Positions 1,727-55,800 of a stretch of 64,000 bases of DNA are shown here, piece by piece. Numbering within the stretch: position 1 is the stretch's first letter; every line of letters starts with the position of its first letter. Source of the stretch: Ruditapes philippinarum (taxonomy: Eukaryota); assembly GCF_026571515.1 (NCBI RefSeq), contig NW_026862585.1, forward strand, positions 124,001 through 188,000. Direction: 5' to 3'. The position numbers and the translations under genes were made by a program. Below the pieces are notes generated by a model. It was given only the letters and a program-made list of their open reading frames with translations. It searched no databases and was not told the origin of the DNA.

Positions 1727-4700
1727 ATGGATTTCGAAGACTTAGGACTACACGACTGGTTATCCAATCAGTGTAAAACAATGGGACTTAAAAAACCTTC
1801 CGGAATCCAAGAAAATTGTATTCCTCACATATTGAAAGGTATGCATTAAAACAGTTATTTGTATAAATCATATGATTTCGCGACTTGTTTTTTTTTTTTT
1901 TGTTTTTTAATCGACTTTCTCACTGAGACGTTTGACGCCCAAGTTTTTCACTACATTGTGACATATTTATGTCAATCTGTTATTCAATAAATTTGCGTTA
2001 TTGGGCATGGCATAAAAGATTTGAAAGTGGCTAGCCGTACGGGCCCGTACTAAATATATCCCGGGACAACCAATATTCAATCAGTTAAGCTGTTGGAAGG
2101 GGAAATTATACTTTAAATTTATTTTAGCTATTAATGCATCTATTAACACTTATTCATTTTCAGGTTGGTACATTTTCAACAAGTCTTGATCTTTCTTAGA
2201 AATTCAATAAAAACAATATGACCCACTCGGGTTACTCCCTGGAATATTTTAACCCAAATTCAAACAGCAGGCTAATCACCATGGAAAATTTGTTAAAGAT
2301 AAATCAGGGCCACTAAAAATTGTATAAAACTTCACGATAGTCTATTCAACAATTTTCAACAGTTTTTTCAAGATTTTAAAAAAACTTACACTAAATGTTA
2401 TAACATATGTACAGCACAATGCATTGGTATGACTAGTGTTAATGTGTTTAAAAAGGCAGTTAAAGGTGTCACTTCTTAGTACACTATTTGGGGTGCAAAA
2501 TGATAAATGCATCCAATCTTTACAGCTATTTTACCTTCCCCATTTTAAAATATTAGCAAATATGGAAACTTGTCTAGATCTGCCGGCTGGTATCGCTTAC
2601 AAAACAATTATTCTACAATCATCACATGAAAAAATTTGATAACAATATAAGATTTTATTAATAAGGACCCCGTGTAAAGTCTGATGAATATTTAGTGGTA
2701 CATCATATAAATAAATGTTTTAAATACACCTAGGACTGAGGTACAAATGGTAAAACTCTTTAGCCAATACTTTATAAAAAATTAACTTGCTTAGAAAAAA
2801 TTTTACCACTATTTTAAACAAGTGACTATATTGATATAGTGAAAGTTGGACAATTTATATTGTGTCACTTAAAACAAACAGTTTCTTATTGTTTTTCTGA
2901 AAACATCTGACAATTAATCAAGTGTGGCATTTCTGCAAGTTTTGAAGTTAATACAACATGTGACTTTATGCAATTTAGTCAGGCATGACATCAGTGCCAC
3001 AGAATTAAGAATGTGTTTGAATTTAGGTTGTGATTGAAAATTGGTTGTTTCGGGATATATTAGATCTATATCATTTTTTTATTTTTTGTTTGAGATGAAG
3101 GTAATTGAATTAAAAGCATGTACTAACTATTAACACATGTTTAAAATGTAAAATACTACAGTTTACATGGTTTTGAGAGCTAGGAGGGTTGTAGAGTGGG
3201 TGAGGGGGAGTGGGGTTGGCCCGGGGGTAGTGACCAATCAACGCGCCGAACACCTATGATTGTGAGAGCCTTACCATAATTAACCATATTGAAACTATAC
3301 ATGTTAGCAGCATTACAATTTATGCATCACCGGAAGACGAAATTTTAACACACTAAAATTTGCATATGCAAGTTAAAAAGAGTAAAGAATTTGTCTTATA
3401 AATTTAGTTACAACAATCTTTCAATTGGCACAAGTACTGCATAAAGATCTGAGATTGTATGGGATTTCAGATTTCTGAAACTAATAATGGCACTAATATT
3501 ATATAAATATATATAAAAGGTAAAATAATATCAAGTAATTTTAGGCTATTTTTCTTTGTTTCAAAAATCATACATCGATTTCTTTCACAAAATGCTTTAA
3601 TGCCATCATACTGCCATTTTTCCAGGAAAATATGATGTCATACTGTACAACACAGTATGTTGTTCATTTTCTATCCCCAAAATTAGTGGTGCACCCTTAA
3701 CAGAAACACATTTGATAAATGTATCTCTAGATTTATTCCATTTACTCTTTATAGAACAATTCATTTGATAAGATCATGATGTCTTTGTATGACTGATTGC
3801 AGGTGAAGACTGTATTGGATGTGCTAAAACTGGAAGTGGTAAAACTGCAGCATTTGCTCTACCAATCTTACAGAAATTGTCAGAAGATCCATTTGGAATA
3901 TTTGCTCTTGTGCTTACACCAACTCGTGAACTGGCATTTCAGATTTCGGAGCAGTTTAATGTTCTAGGAAAACCAATTGGTGTGAGGGTATCTGTGATAA
4001 CAGGTGGTCTAGGTAACAGTATTTACTGTAGTTATAATAATAAAATAGATGTTTGTCCTGTTATAGCTTGGATTTAAAAATTATATACAATAAAGCCTTT
4101 CTTGCATATACAACTTGATTTTCTAGTGCTTGCAATAATGAAGGAAATGGTACAATTTTGCCACGATAATGAATATTTGTACATGTATGTCCTACTAAAA
4201 GAAAATACAGCTTGATCAAAGATGTTGCATTTTTACTCTATTATTAATACATGTAATTATGTGACATGGCCAGAAAAACAATCATTCGCTGGCTGCAGAT
4301 TCAGAACAGTATCTCCTGCTGTCTTTAATTCAGAAGAGCCTGGTAACATTAACCATTTAATTGGCCTTAAGTTGGATATTGTCTGTAAGCAGCTGTTGTC
4401 AATATAGCCTTAAGAGACTTAGATTTTGAAGTTGAAGTTTTCATTATCCTATAAGCATGATCTATCAAACTCTAAGGTCAGTAATTTTCTTTTATATTCT
4501 TTATTTTTAATGTCAAATTGAGATTGAATTTGATGCATATTTGACAAGAATATACCCCCCCCCCCCGCCCCCCAAAAAAAAAACACAAAAAAACAACAAC
4601 AAAAAAACAAACAAACAAAAAAAAACAACATTGGCATTGTCTGTGAATATGAAATATTTACACAAATCTCTATCAGACTTAGTACAATCAAGAGGATAAC

Positions 4701-46379: not shown

Positions 46380-47808
46380 TCCGGGTATAGGTGTGTCCGT
46401 CGGGAATACACGGGTATTTTGCCGACGGTGAGCCGACAATCGTTCTAGACAGCTCATATCTGGCGAATTCCGGCTGGCCCCTGTGGGGAACAGACTCAAT
46501 TACGCAGAACCACACATGGTGGGATGGTTAGGGGGTCTGACCGGGTGTCCGCAGGTATAGGTGTGTCCGTCGGGAATACTCTGGTATTTTGCCGACGGTG
46601 AGCCGAAAATCGTTCTAGACAGCTCATATCTGGCCGATTCCGGCTGGCCCCTGTGGGGACCAGACTCAATTACGCAGAACTGCACATGGTGGGATGGTTA
46701 GGGGGTCTGACCGGGTGTCCGCAGGTATAGGTGTGTCCGTTGGAAATACTCTGGTATTTTGCCGACGGTGAGCCGAAAATCGTTGTAGACAGCTCATATC
46801 TGTCCAATTCAGGCTGGCCCCTGTGGGGACCATACTCAATTGCGCAGAACCGCACATGGTGGGATGGTTAGGGGGTCTGACCGGGTGTCCGCGGGTATAG
46901 GTGTGTCTGTCGGGAATACTCTGGTATTTTGCCGACGGTGAGCCGAAAATCGTTCTAGACAGCTCATATCTGGCCAATTCCGGCTGGCTCCTGTGGGGAC
47001 CAGACTCAATTACGCAGAACTGCATATGGTGGGATGGTTAGGGGGTCTGACCGGGTGTCTGCAGGTATAGGTGTTCGTCGGAAATACTCTGGTATTTTGC
47101 CGACCACGAGCCGAAAATCGTTCTAGACAGCTCATATCTGGCCAATTCCGGCTGGCCCCTGGTGGGACCAGACTCAATTACGCAGAACTGCACATGGTGG
47201 GATGGTTAGGGAGTCTGATCAGGTGTCCGCGGGTATAGGTGTGTCCGTCGGGAATACTCTGGTATTTTGCAAACGGTGAGCCGAAAATCGTTCTAGACAG
47301 CTCATATCTGGCCAATTCCGGCTGGCCCCTGTGGGGTCCAGACTTAATTACGCAGAACCGCACATGGTGGGATGGTTAGGGGGTCTGACCGGGTGTCTGC
47401 AGGTATAGATGTGTCCGTCGGAAATACTCTGGTATTTTGCCGACGGTGAGCCGAAAATCGTTGTAGACAGCTCATATCTGGCCAATTCCGGCTGGCCCCT
47501 GGTGGGACCAGACTCAATTACGCAGAACTGCACATGGTGGGATGGTTAGGGAGTCTGACCAGGTGTCCGCGGGTATAGGTGTGTCCGTCGGGAATACTCT
47601 GGTATTTTGCCGACGGTGAGCCAAAAAATCGTTCTAGACAGCTCATATCTGGCCAATTCCGGCTGGCCCCTGGTGGGACCAGACTCAATTACGCAGAACC
47701 GCACATGGTAGGATGGTTAGGTGGTCTGACCGGGTGACCGCGGGTATAGGTGTGTCCGTCGGGAATACTCTGGTATTTTGCCGACGGTGAGCCGAAAATC
47801 GTTCTAGA
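46380..47808. repeat. GC-rich ~170-bp tandem satellite, about 8.5 copies
   Basis: GGTATAGGTGTGTCCGTCGGGAATACTCTGG recurs near 46384, 46554, 46724, 46894, 47064 and on to about 47743, with high identity. Confidence 0.95.
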
Positions 47809-49896: not shown

Positions 49897-52800
49897 ATGT
49901 TTTGGAATGTGTTTAAATATATATTTTGTTTTGTAATTTTGATATTTGCAGTGTATTCACAAGGTATTTATTTATAAATAATATTTGCTTTAAAACAATT
50001 GTGTTCGTTTTTAAAGATATACGTTAATTGCAATTTATATATAAAATACAATTAAAATGTTTATACATCAACTTGCTCGCATTGTCCGTAAAACACAGTG
50101 ATCTTTTTTTATTTTATTCATGACATTTGTAATATCGGTTTAAATAAAAAAATAAATCATTAGATGAAAGATTATGTCAAATTACTTAATATGAAACATT
50201 TAACATGTTAAATTGGCAATTCTTTCAGACTGTAACATGGGTGGGTTCACATACAAGGATTCAAAGTACATACTGTCACGTGAACCAAGGACCTTGTACT
50301 CGTCAAAGGTAAAATAAAACATGAACGCATGAAATCTAAATAATTTTCAAAAAGATAATGTATTTTAATGCTCTGCTGCGTTTGTACATTTGTCTGTACA
50401 TAATATTTTCGTTTCAGCCAAATCACGGCTTGTAAAGAACAAGAGCTTCCTCTTTCGGAGGTAAACTATAAATTGCGCTATCTCTCCCTTTGAGTTAGTG
50501 CATGTCGCTGAATTTAAGTATCAACAAAGACATTATGTTGTCTTGTTATAAAAATTTTGTAAACTCGAATATCGAAAATCAATGAAAACTATACCATGTA
50601 CATTTGATTGAAGTTTCAAGCGATGTTAATGTAATGATTTTTTTATCTGTATCCTCAGCGGCGTTTCCCGTTTAGCGAATTTAGCGTTGAAATGGACTGT
50701 TTCATCACGATAGAGTTGTAATTAGCTATCCAGAATATTATCGATTACGTTTTAAGTAAATGTTTTGTCTAGAATGTAATTTAAATCTAAATCGAAAAAC
50801 AAAAAAAAGAATAAAGTAGATTTTGATGAAGGTCTGCTCTACCGCAAATTACCTACACGAAGCCTTCTACGTACCGTCTGCGTGGAAACACGGACCCCGC
50901 AGCATTAGCAAGGTCATTTTGAAGAGAAGTTGCTGTCAAAAACAAGACATGCTTAACCGACAAAAAACCAATCCTGCGCTGGTATTGTGACCCTTTGCGG
51001 ACCTTCATCTTGCCTCCTTACGTGTGTACCATGTAGCCGGACTCCCTCCCAGGCTCTGGTTATGACGGTATGGTGTACACTAAACGCCGCACCAATCTGG
51101 CAGAAGGTGTCTCCCTGCTGTACTATCCCTACAGCCCTCCATAACTCTGCTTCTATCAAATGCCGCCTAATGTAAGCATCCGCCATATCGAAGTGACAAA
51201 TGCAAGAAATATAAGCTGAATGACAATAAGCCAGTTATGTCACTGTATAACAAAGACATATGATTGTATACCCCATCAAAAACATAAACATATTGGAGTT
51301 CATGCTTTCCATGCTACCTAGGCGAGTTGTAACGAATTAGTCAACACGGATTCATGTCAGGGGCAAGCCTCGTTACCGTCCAATGGGCGGGTCACCTCAG
51401 TACGGATATTCCGATCCGAACCGCAAAATATGACAGATATTATTATTATACTTGTATAAATATAAAAATTAACTCATGGTGCTTAGCAACGTAGCAAAAG
51501 GTAAGCAGTATATACGTGTGCATTTAATATGACAGTTATGTTTTTATAATAAATTACCAGGGGATGTGAGTGAGCGGGCATCTTTGCATTCAGCTTTTAT
51601 ACATGGCGCCCGTTCAATAAAGGTACATGCTCGCGTAATTTTATCCGTTAATGTATGCGTTATTTTCCTTAAATTTTCACGTGCGTGCTCAGTTTGTGTG
51701 CAAGAATGTTTGATATACATGTATACAATGAGAACGGATGTACAATGTCACATTATTTTAAGTTCCAAACTTCCAAAACAAGTGCAAAGATTTGAGATTT
51801 GTTGTTAATTTCTTAAACTATTTGTATCATGATCGTATTTGGTGCACTTTTAATCAATTCTCTGATTACACGTAATTTTTATAACAGATACATTGCGAAA
51901 CCATTGGAACACGTCTGGTGACAATCGGAACTGTATCGGAATACCATATTCTCCAAGGAAACAGTGAGTTTACACAAACATGCATACATTTTTTTTAAAT
52001 AATTATTTTTCTTTCCGTAAGCAATTATATACACACATAAACGGGTAGAGTTTCCTTATTACATGCCTTACATGTCACAAATGTGTTCTGTTGTTATATT
52101 TCTACCCTTTCCATATCAAGAAATATTCCCTTGTTTCTTTTTGCATAGTTATAAAGCATTTGACTTCTATGGAGATGTGATTTACAAACTTCGTAGGATC
52201 ATGGGTCATTGTAATTTTTCTGCCGTCTTCACTAAAATTATCAAACGGTTTATTAAAAGAGGTTATGACCCAATTATTATAAGGCATACCGCATGCTTGG
52301 TGTTCAACCCTTTTACAGTTTGACGCTACGCTTTCCTCTTTTAATTACATCTGACGGACCAAGTGGGAGACTCTATGATGGACAGTTTAAGATCTAGTTG
52401 GTCCTTTGGGACTGAATTGTCTAAATGTTCGTCTTCTGCCTTGCTTCGTCGGGCCATTGTAGGTAATTTTCTTGTTGCTCTGCCTTCCTTTAAGGCATCG
52501 AGTACTTTGGTAATGGTCATTAGGGTGTAACTTTTTTTACATATTTACATAATTTTGTATGTGTTTTATTTATTTCGTCTTATGTAACCATGACCATTGT
52601 TAGAATTTCACTTGGCGGGGATTAATTTTATACACATTTTCGTGTCATTCAGGAACATATTGGGGCTAAGAGTGAGGTTTGGCGCGCCTAAAACCGGTTT
52701 AAACTCGCCAGTGGTTTAACTACCACTGACCGTTCCAAGGCGGTACCCCTTTGTGTTCCTTCACGTGTTTTTCTTGTCTGTATTGTTACTTGTTTTTGGA

Positions 52801-55800
52801 TGTTTACATGTTTTTGTGATGTCTGTCTTGTTGGATTGTCGTTGACGGTAGGTTTTTTTCTCTCCCCCCCCTCTTCCATTTTTAACCCCCCCCCACCTTT
52901 TCACCCGTACAGCCCTTTTCCCTTTAATTCTCTTATGGGCCCGTTTTTGTTTATATTATTTCACATTGCGTGTCCCGCTCCTTTCGCCCTTGTGTCCGCT
53001 CCGGGTTTTTGTTTGGTGCCTTCTGGGTGTCCTGCTTGGATGTGTCCGGGGGCAGCGTCCTGTGAACGTTGCCTTTGCCTTGTTGATCTTTATTCTTGAT
53101 ATTTTACACGAAAGATGATATTCTGCCACTCTCGTAGACTAGTACTCACTGTCGCCCATTGGGCTTAAAGGGATACAACTTAAATATAAATAAAACAGTC
53201 AACTCGAGCGAAACATCATCAGACAAGAGTGGCATATTTGTCAAACTTTCTCTACATAAATTATGTTCTTTTACAGACGTTTGTGAGAAGAAGTTTTGGA
53301 TAGGATCACCGAATATTTTCAATCCGAAAACCCGATCAGTAATGTCGTCAAGTGCAATTGATCCTGATATCCTGGATAACAAGCCCCTGTGTATCATCTT
53401 GAACAAAGGATTGACAGTCACTAATTGCAGTGATAAATATCAATCTATCTGTGAAAAAAGTGTGTATCCTAAATAAAATATAATCTTCGTGTTTTGCAAG
53501 TCCACCATTTTATTCTACAAACAGTAAATTACATATGCAGACATTAATATTTGCTGGTTTTTGCCGAAGCAGTGAATTAGATCAATTCAGATTTGTGGCT
53601 AGTATTAAAATGTTTTCGAAATAAGTTTACTCATTTATAATTTCAGAGCTACATTGTTTATTGAATGTTAAAAGTTTTTTATTACCTAGTAATGAATAAC
53701 TTTAAATATATGATGTAACTCCGTATAATGAAACTTTTGCAGATGAAACCCGAAAATCTCTTTGGGTCGAGGAACTGCTCAACTTTTCACTACCTATAGG
53801 TAACACATGAACATTTTCGTGTCTCTTTAATTATATTTGTTTGGTTTTACGAAGAATGTCACCCATTTTTGGTCATTTCTCGGGGGCCATTCCACCGCCT
53901 GGCTTTTCTGGGGAGCTCAGTTACCGACAAATTATCCTAAATGTTTTCTGAATCAGTGATGAGAGACAACTTACCATTAGACTCAATGCTCGAGATCATT
54001 AGTCATGGCAAAATTACGCCTCGGTCGAGGATCGAACCAGCATTCTATGGATTTCAAATCCGATGTTATTCCTTATGAGCTAAGCGGCCTCTTAAAGTAA
54101 ACTTAAAGAAGATTTAAGAAAATCAAAAAAAATATTTTGTATAAATAAAGGCAGATAAACTGGCAAATAATATGTTTTGGATGAGGCTTTTTTATCAATA
54201 ATTTGAATTAATGTTGTCAGAATAAAATAGAAATATAAGTAGAAAGATTTGAGATGACACTCTTACAATACACGAAAAGTGGTAAAAGTAGTCAATATAT
54301 TACCACTTTATGTATCATGTTTTCATCAAATTTCAATACAGAGAAAAGCATACTGAAACAAATTGCATTTACGTCCCAATAAGAAATGATTAGGAAAAAG
54401 ACTGCATATAAAAGTATTTAGGGTCTTTAGACAATGCAACATCTAGTTTTGTTATCATCGTGTTGAAAAAGGATTACTTCGGTGAATTTTGGATACATAT
54501 AGACCTAGGATCTGTGCTAAAGACGACAATTTAAGGTTTATCAAGGTAGTAATATCTAGCCAACCTGTACATACTGTTCACTCCTCAGTTTTGAAATACT
54601 GCCATTGAATTTTGCACAAGAGCAAAGAGATATTTTAATACCTTTCTTATACTTGTTACAGGTTATGATTTAAACAATGCCATTGCATGTGTTGTCAAAA
54701 TAGTGGATGATTTTCTAACTTTACTTTCAGATGAAGTGTCGAGGAATTGCGAATACCTACAAAAGAACAAGCAAAAGGAGTATGTGAAATCAAATGTGTC
54801 AGTTGAAGACCTATACGATAAGGTCAGGCTTCTCTTACTCAACAAGCTGATTTGCCATTATGACTACTTCATTTGTTGCTGTTAAAATAGAAGAAGAAAA
54901 AACAATAAAAAACTATTTTGAAAAGTTATATAATTATGTACATACAATGTCCTCTGTTACTCTGTAAAAATACAGTTTAAAACATTGAACTTCTTTACAT
55001 TAACTTTTTGATTCTGAATAAATCTGATTTTTAGATCATTTAAGAGATTCATAACAAAGTCATTTCTGATGGATTAAGAAATTATTCCATGTATAATTGA
55101 AGATATGACGATTTCAGATAATATACATAAATATAAGGTAAAGTTAGTAGAAAATAAACTAGCTTTATTCATACATTTTTCAGGTGTTTAACTCGTCAGA
55201 TTATGACCCAGTGAATGTTTTAAAACAACTTAAGAACGCAACATATGCATGTAAAGAAACCAATGAAACATTTCAAGCCGTAAGACTAATAAAGGTCGTG
55301 AAAATGATGACAAAACTTGCAGAATTGGATTTAAACAACTCAAAGGCATTGGCAGAAGACAGGCTAAAGGTAAATATGTACCAGCTCTGAAGATATTTTG
55401 TACTTATATATTACTTTGAAAACAAAATGATTAAATTGAAATAAATAAAATTTGATATTGAGCTTGTCATATCAAAATATGGCTTGTTATCTCTCATTTA
55501 TTTGTTGCTATAACAAAAAGACTTAAGATATTTCAAGAAATATAGATTTAACTGCCTACCTAGATACGACTTGTATAAGATACCATAATTATTAATAATT
55601 TAATGCAATTACAAGAAATTGAAACCAATTCTTCTTTATTATATCTGCCTTAATTATATATTACTTTGCATTTGTATGTCGGTCGGTTGGTCGGTCCATA
55701 GACCAAATGGTTTCCGATCAATAACTGAAGAACGCTTAAGCCTAGAAACTTAAAACTTGGCATGATGATTATCCATGACCAGTATATGATCTCTATTGAT

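Follow-up and report, generated by a model that had tools for sequence, protein, structure and literature searches.

Penelope-like elements (PLEs) are the retrotransposon class most tightly tied to small ribozymes. All PLE clades carry hammerheads save Naiad and most Chlamys, and the authors who described the Naiads took this as evidence that the ribozyme may be parasitic or may not be needed (PMC8557442). In the minimal hammerheads of PLEs a short palindrome takes the place of the helix beside the cleavage site. These ribozymes are proposed to work as dimers, and their monomers are poor at cleavage (PMC4209133). Naiads are diagnosed by an N-terminal GIY-YIG domain and a DKA motif, include a selenoprotein-encoding subgroup in clams and have no canonical hammerheads (PMC8557442). 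The subject here is a stretch of the Ruditapes philippinarum genome at positions 52651-52760 of a 64,000-nucleotide piece of contig NW_026862585.1 (the window; unprefixed coordinates refer to it). This stretch is probably a decayed copy of a motif conserved in the 3' untranslated region (UTR), or pseudo-long terminal repeat (pseudo-LTR), of Naiad-type PLEs, the motif being a circularly permuted twister ribozyme fold of type P5.

Twisters are already known in eukaryotes, and variants at the 5' end of Perere-3 long interspersed nuclear elements (LINEs) have been shown to cleave (PMC8501958). A large survey made new twister predictions in groups that include bivalves, none of them tied to retroelements, and the forms it tested were all of type P1 (PMC11662667). 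The P1 helix is phylogenetically conserved but dispensable for twister cleavage, and imperfections in P1 and P2 are tolerated, whereas those in the pseudoknots and at the catalytic bases are not (PMC5408937, PMC11662667). In the literature library that was searched, no paper contains both 'Naiad' and 'twister', and the papers that name twister and Penelope do not link them.

The original prediction described a type-P5 twister with a non-canonical P1, carried in sense orientation by a Penelope-like fragment. All of the motif elements that it listed are indeed present between 52651 and 52760:

52651-52665, + strand: 5' strand of P5 (AGGAACAUA-UU-GGGG), seen in the minimum free energy (MFE) fold and in flank duplex energies across 37 loci
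52670-52673, + strand: 3' strand of P2 (GAGU), which pairs with 52703-52706
52674-52677, + strand: GAGG, with G52674 as the candidate catalytic guanine and G52676-G52677 as the T1 strand; it matches GAGGG in the Rfam twister-P1 consensus
52681-52688, + strand: Pal1, the perfect palindrome GGCGCGCC, at the place of P1; a palindrome occupies the same position in 37/37 distinct relatives
52691-52700, + strand: Pal2, the palindrome AAACCGGUUU, whose last nucleotide is directly 5' of the predicted scissile bond
52700-52702, + strand: U^AA, the predicted cut falling between U52700 and A52701; it corresponds to UAA in the Rfam twister-P1 consensus
52703-52706, + strand: 5' strand of P2 (ACUC), documented by the P2 pair counts
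52707-52708, + strand: T2 strand GC, in which C52708 pairs with G52739 and G52707 is private to the window copy
52709-52728, + strand: P3 hairpin CAGUGGU/ACCACUG, seen in covariation and in the MFE fold
52729-52744, + strand: P4 (ACCG/CGGU) with the 8-nt loop UUCCAAGG (52733-52740), in which CC 52735-52736 is the T1 partner and GG 52739-52740 the T2 partner
52746-52760, + strand: 3' strand of P5 (CCCC-UU-UGUGUUCCU), seen in the MFE fold and in flank duplex energies

The tetranucleotide CUAA stands between the 5' strand of P5 and the GAGU of P2, GAGG comes next, and a 22-nt segment then leads up to U52700. Folding the 110-mer gives an MFE of -45.3 kcal/mol, compared with -30.5 +/- 3.5 for dinucleotide shuffles (z = -4.26; 0/200 as good), and the MFE structure contains P5, P3 and P4. 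In the same fold a GGUUU that includes the T1 guanines is paired with AAACC, a pairing that would compete with T1.

Copies from a single young family cannot show selection on a fold, and for this reason relatives were sought without using the motif. The open reading frame (ORF) of the reverse transcriptase (RT) has 5221 homologues, and 86 loci with RT identities of 39-80% were fetched from metagenome and genome contigs by RT alignment. A strict descriptor (GAGG and TAA, four pairs in P2 and two in T2, and a CCAAG loop with three or more closing pairs) matched 10 of these loci, all on the RT strand and downstream of RT, and 0 on opposite strands. A covariance model was built from a seed of 11 gap-free sequences and contained only P2, five P3 pairs and P4, the remainder being aligned by Infernal. 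A MAFFT alignment in which the GGGG-GAGGG group was shifted by one column was set aside. A search with the covariance model gave 43 occurrences of the motif. Of the 38 loci whose downstream flank is 600 nt or longer, 32 have it. The median distance from the RT match is 342 nt, the motif is always on the RT strand, and the RT identity of the relatives that bear it is 42-80%. In tandem or partial-tandem copies it often stands on both sides of the ORF, with the two copies 3838 nt apart in L160 (a tandem unit) and 4181 nt apart in L096. This is the pseudo-LTR arrangement of PLEs, which is where hammerheads lie in other clades (PMC4209133). The motif also occurs upstream of RT in L105, L129 and L164, and as an inverted copy in L147.

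Pairs were counted in 41 distinct sequences, with shuffled partners (500 shuffles) and slid partners as the covariation controls. Standard pairs make up 95.1% of the cells, compared with 74.1% when partners are shuffled and 32-44% when they are slid by 1-3 columns. The covariation score is 0.504, compared with 0.145 for the control, and 0/500 shuffles reach 0.504. P2 is paired in 96.6% of cells, with 2/4 pairs changed on both sides; P3 in 96.5%, with all five modelled pairs changed on both sides; and P4 in 98.2%, with two such pairs. The weightiest covariation is that of the two pseudoknots. T1 and T2 were absent from the search model, so their pairs cannot be a product of how the alignment was fitted. 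At the first T2 pair (column 47:121), 20 sequences have C-G, 11 A-U, 5 G-U, 2 G-C and 1 U-G, and only the window copy is left without a pair. At the inner T1 pair (column 7:117), 34 sequences have G-C and 6 have A-U, the latter combining GAAG with a UCCUAAG loop. The sequence of P5 is wholly different between families and yet always complementary, native flanks giving -22.1 kcal/mol compared with -9.6 for cross-locus pairings and shuffles (37 loci).

Could the likeness to a twister be an accident within a repeat, with no selected structure? Rfam scores that fall far under the cut-off (see below) would suit this idea. However, chance does not account for covariation in five helices, two of them pseudoknots that were never modelled, nor for P5 complementarity that outlasts the P5 sequence. 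It does not account for a constant strand and position relative to RT, or for a strict descriptor that matches nothing on opposite strands. This explanation can scarcely be credited. The original prediction had proposed covariation across genomic copies as a test, to be sought in P2, P3, P5 and T2. Across related elements it was found in all four and in P4 and T1 as well, bearing out the type-P5 architecture at the level of the family.

Conservation of individual nucleotides points in the same direction. The GA of GAGG is invariant in the 41 distinct sequences, and the C-AAG of the loop varies hardly or not at all. In 40/41 the AA that follows the predicted scissile bond is kept, and the nucleotide that precedes it is mostly U, with a few C or A. 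Across the family P3 is optional, and the 8-nt loop of P4 carries YCCAAG. After permutation, the order and the letters match the Rfam twister-P1 consensus ccuuUAAcgCcGCC...cCGGUCCCAAGCCCGg.UAAAgGcgGAGGG, including its capital letters. Some relatives (L143, L156) have a fully canonical UCCCAAGC loop together with a GC T2 strand. Judged by sequence comparison, then, the family carries a genuine type-P5 twister fold, and does so in a PLE clade that was reported to be without hammerheads.

A fold is one thing and a working ribozyme is another. Evidence of cleavage was looked for in two RNA runs bearing the same species label, of which only 4-5% each was read, with no end-specific method. Combined depth over the region is about 70-80 reads and is roughly equal between read orientations, so the libraries look unstranded. 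RNA of the element is expressed. About 98% of the reads at 52707 have C, which means that they come from copies other than the one in the window.

Taken together, several observations weigh against a functional twister at this position. RNA depth is flat across 52700/52701, with no dip and no pile-up of molecule ends anywhere; in run X21 the four bins from 52652 to 52735 are 40.9/36.6, 42.6/39.4, 39.4/31.3 and 48.1/35.3. Truncated genomic copies likewise show no excess of 5' ends at the site (about 4 at 0 to -3 and about 8 at -7 to -12). No Rfam twister model reaches its cut-off, a check that the original prediction had proposed and that went against it. The window gives a partial twister-P1 alignment confined to P3 and P4 (52709-52745) at 16.9 bits and L104 gives 24.1 bits, compared with a cut-off of 67.2, and the type-P5 model RF02684 has no match. 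A genome-wide search with RF02684 found none among 80 scored out of 14721 candidates, too few to be informative. Six of the 38 relatives with enough flank have no detectable motif, and these are mostly the ones with the most distant RTs. The outer (third) T1 pair (column 9:115) is G-C in 13 sequences, U-A in 3, U-G in 3 and A-U in 2, and is non-standard in 17, mostly U.U. Many families have one bulged or mismatched P2 nucleotide. Finally, the canonical P1 helix is absent, as there is no pairing between the strands that flank the cleavage site and T1.

What if the fold is real and does no chemistry? It might be a structured 3' UTR element, twister-derived or twister-like, that serves RT recognition, template dimerization or packaging. 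The missing read ends and depth dip, the scatter of genomic 5' ends and the lack of P1 would all be expected of such an element, and two covarying palindromes suggest that RNA-RNA dimerization could be a function in its own right. On the other hand, the positions that matter for the chemistry (the GA of GAGG, the AA and the C-AAG of the loop) are invariant or nearly so across 41 divergent sequences. Canonical PLEs have a ribozyme at the same place (PMC4209133), and monomeric PLE hammerheads likewise have low activity. A non-catalytic role is thus unlikely, and a twister-type ribozyme is still the preferred reading. The reads covered show no sign of efficient constitutive cleavage in vivo, and this weighs against a fast monomeric ribozyme. 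The flat RNA profile fits either an activity that is gated, by dimers or tandem transcripts, or a non-catalytic role.

This brings the region where P1 should be into focus. It was predicted to be non-canonical and turns out to hold two palindromes instead. The first, just past T1, is a perfect palindrome of 6-10 nt in 37/37 distinct versions, with about 19 different sequences (GGCGCGCC, UGGUGCACCA, UGAGAUCUCA, UGGGUACCCA and ACGCGCGU are examples). The second, which ends before the scissile bond and is at least 6 nt long, is found in 20/37 distinct versions (AAACCGGUUU, AAACAUGUUU and AACCGGUU, for example), and in others its centre is broken. The central bases of a perfect palindrome are of no use to a hairpin, and their conservation would point to an intermolecular duplex or to a function at the level of DNA. 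The two palindromes suggest either RNA dimerization or a DNA-level site. RNAcofold favours homodimers by 8-20 kcal/mol. This was not counted as evidence, because any hairpin-rich RNA does likewise when pseudoknot terms are left out.

One further step can be offered tentatively. Perhaps P1 is formed between two RNA copies through the covarying palindromes, so that self-cleavage is coupled to dimerization or to tandem transcripts. This dimer-gated twister is doubtful in itself, and yet it would account for the apparently uncut monomeric transcripts in RNA-seq, and it would be convergent with the solution proposed for the minimal hammerheads of other PLEs. Under the preferred reading as a whole, the RNA would cleave itself between the last nucleotide of Pal2 and AA. 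The palindromes would stand in for P1, and the GGUUU/AAACC pairing could sequester the T1 guanines, such that the monomer may be kept from cleaving while a dimer or tandem cleaves more readily. The outcome would be the processing of tandem or read-through transcripts to unit length, which is the role proposed for PLE hammerheads.

Some genomic copies (G000:C11174:5480-5514 and G000:C7664:130408-130442) have lost the whole P1 region by a deletion between two GGTTT repeats. Here GAGG is fused directly to TTTAAACTCC, giving a natural twister without palindromes.

The carrier was predicted to be Penelope-like, and it can now be placed more precisely, in the Naiad clade. Longer copies have an RT-like ORF with YDFSTLYTTLPH, GIPMGTNCA and RYLDDIF. 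Motifs of a GIY-YIG domain can be read by eye N-terminal to RT, as FIYVLT*NAPGCGIQYVGQT in the window's own family (L076) and, in the RT frame of L160 upstream of RT, as ...LIYVIT*EARGCGAQYVGET... and ...NWIKRLQTPYPLGLN.... Pfam has no match on these GIY-YIG pieces, and the Naiad assignment rests on the motifs seen by eye. The DKA motif, a criterion taken from PMC8557442, is present as PADKAANN in L160, L076 and L077. The tandem locus L160 has the entire order in a single frame: GIY-YIG, a KR-rich block, *SC, ADKAANN and RT. Its *SC, a candidate for the CxC motif, stands where that motif is expected, with TGA as the first position. Every in-frame stop of this ORF is TGA, including the terminal stop at 4234, and the in-frame TGA codons of the family ORFs are at cysteine-like positions.

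Selenocysteine insertion sequence (SECIS) elements complete the picture. The Rfam family SECIS_1, with a cut-off of 35 bits, scores 42.1 in L160 after the ORF. Over L002, L076 and L077 of the window's family its scores are 35.6 (L076), 34.6 and 33.6. The element follows the ORF stop and precedes the twister motif. Together with the in-frame TGA codons, it gives the window's family the appearance of one of the selenoprotein-encoding Naiads known from clams. No hammerhead family was found at E<=1 in L160, L076, L077, L002 and others, full-length copies included. The SECIS_1 matches and the corresponding features of the window copy are as follows:

L002:1235-1296: SECIS_1 (Rfam)
L076:1851-1913, - strand: SECIS_1 (Rfam)
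L077:8028-8090: SECIS_1 (Rfam)
L160:387-449 and 4225-4287: SECIS_1 (Rfam)
52161-52323, + strand: C-terminal remnant of the RT ORF; ORF 52063-52323 translates as ...FYGDVIYKLRRIMGH...NPFTV, matching how the 398-aa RT ORF ends in longer copies
about 52374-52435, + strand: position homologous to the SECIS, approximate because it is an offset from copy L002

No SECIS was detected in the window copy itself by the Rfam scan. By blastn against other copies, 52161-53106 on the + strand (annotated as 52161-53108) is a 946-bp, 5'-truncated copy of a high-copy Naiad-type PLE. It is made up of the 3' UTR and tail, preceded by the end of the RT ORF, and is 98-99% identical to the best genomic copies. The 1.4-Gb genome has 3430 occurrences of a 19-nt core from the P4 loop region when up to two mismatches are allowed, compared with one for a reversed control. 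By blastn, the 5' ends of copies of the family vary, and the 3' end is constant, about 383 nt past the core. Ragged 5' ends combined with a fixed 3' end are the signature of 5'-truncated retrotransposition, and the window copy is a dead, 5'-truncated insertion.

Is this particular copy nevertheless an active ribozyme that cuts a host pre-mRNA within an intron? The original prediction raised this possibility, for a receptor gene and a lectin-domain intron. The 110-nt motif differs from the commonest natural variant at a single position, 52707, where it has G instead of C. A shifted T2 register is conceivable (G52707 with C52741 and C52708 with G52740), and twisters tolerate many imperfections (PMC11662667). 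However, that one difference falls in a pseudoknot. With C at 52707 the T2 pairs are a clean CC/GG, a double compensatory change relative to the canonical GC/GC, whereas G52707 faces G52740 and leaves T2 with one pair. The mismatch and the self-complementary AAACCGGUUU had both been noted from the outset and are real, but the mismatch is private to the window copy. Exact 25-mer counts (n=171) by the base at 52707 are C 163, T 5, A 2 and G 1, the last being the window copy, as expected of decay after insertion. G52707 thus appears to be post-insertion decay of a dead copy. The window copy is most likely inactive or strongly impaired, since its T2 is broken and pseudoknots are the part of a twister that is most sensitive to imperfection (PMC11662667).

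The transcript data and the genomic setting lend no help to an active copy. No RNA read ends at 52700/52701, and the reads over the site, which nearly all have the pairing C, were made from other copies. ORF pieces with exon-like repeats do flank the copy on the + strand, but Pfam and PDB sequence searches revealed no lectin or other domain in them and so did not confirm the lectin exon, the intron context or the strand of the host gene. Cleavage of a host pre-mRNA by the window copy is accordingly very unlikely, and this part of the prediction is not supported.

Some further features of the family and its surroundings deserve mention. The same genome has a second subfamily (L052:1446-1520 and 2830-2907; L042:870-947) with compensatory changes in P3, one C.A pair in P2 and GGUGCACC as Pal1 where the window's family has GGCGCGCC. 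It is also transcribed, as loose read ends at 52631 run into its P5. RNA depth is about 500-600 reads at 52400-52480 and about 40-80 from 52500 onward, a roughly tenfold step, and many reads run into unlike sequence. The step and these extensions together indicate that other expressed subfamilies probably share only the 52400-52480 part of the 3' UTR. A recurrent TTCTGTATTTATCTA is fused to the element at three or more different internal sites, always at a TTT(T)A (L009, L038, L042 and L054), and a shorter or slightly variant form is present at G000:C5829:197172-197206 and G000:C14257:61223-61257. They may have arisen where units of the element met in tandem or where the template was switched. 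The Naiad fragment is preceded, about 4.4 kb upstream, by a tandem array at 46384-47808 that has 8.4 copies of a 170-nt unit with 92% identity.

How does all this compare with what has been described? The elements share with the published Naiads (Craig et al. 2021, PMC8557442) the N-terminal GIY-YIG, the DKA motif, in-frame TGA codons, a SECIS immediately past the ORF and the lack of a canonical hammerhead, as well as tandem and inverted copies and copy numbers in the thousands. The difference is that no ribozyme was reported there, whereas the present elements have a twister-type motif downstream of the SECIS and ahead of the 3' end.

Compared with type-P5 twisters (Rfam RF02684, clan CL00120; Roth et al. 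2014 as reviewed in PMC5408937), the termini are likewise in P5, the conserved letters match the Rfam consensus and the order is the same, running from the 3' strand of P2 through GAGG, the P1 region, U^AA, the 5' strand of P2 and a 2-nt T2 strand to P3 and P4. The P4 loop again carries the CC of T1 and, as its last two nucleotides, the partner of T2. However, T2 is mostly CC/GG or AC/GU rather than GC/GC, the third T1 pair is often U.U, palindromes replace P1, P2 is often bulged and P5, at 10-23 bp, is long. The motif belongs to a eukaryotic retroelement, its Rfam scores are far below the cut-off and its cleavage is a prediction. The twisters of Perere-3 LINEs (PMC8501958) are also of this ribozyme class, within a retrotransposon transcript and with a non-standard P1. 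Theirs are at the 5' end of an RTE-type LINE, have P1 completed by the target-site duplication and were shown to cleave, whereas the candidate here is of type P5 and lies in the 3' region of a PLE. The ribozyme class is one already known, but its host element is new and its P1 region is non-canonical. If the identification is correct, it would provide a natural twister that has palindromes in the absence of P1, and it would add thousands of eukaryotic type-P5 twisters that the Rfam models miss.

There is a close parallel with the minimal hammerheads in the pseudo-LTRs of other PLEs (Cervera and de la Pena 2014, PMC4209133). In both cases there is a small self-cleaving-ribozyme motif, on the sense strand, in a repeat that flanks the ORF. 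Both have a high copy number, many covarying families and a palindrome in place of the cleavage-site helix, and in both the activity of the monomer is low or undetected. They differ in that the palindromes here are 6-12 nt long and two in number, and in that the ribozyme is of the twister class and is found in the sole endonuclease-positive (EN+) metazoan PLE clade reported to be without hammerheads. A conserved twister at the hammerhead position would mean that the requirement for self-cleavage still holds in Naiads and only the class of ribozyme has been swapped. Such a swap would strengthen the case for cleavage within the PLE life cycle.

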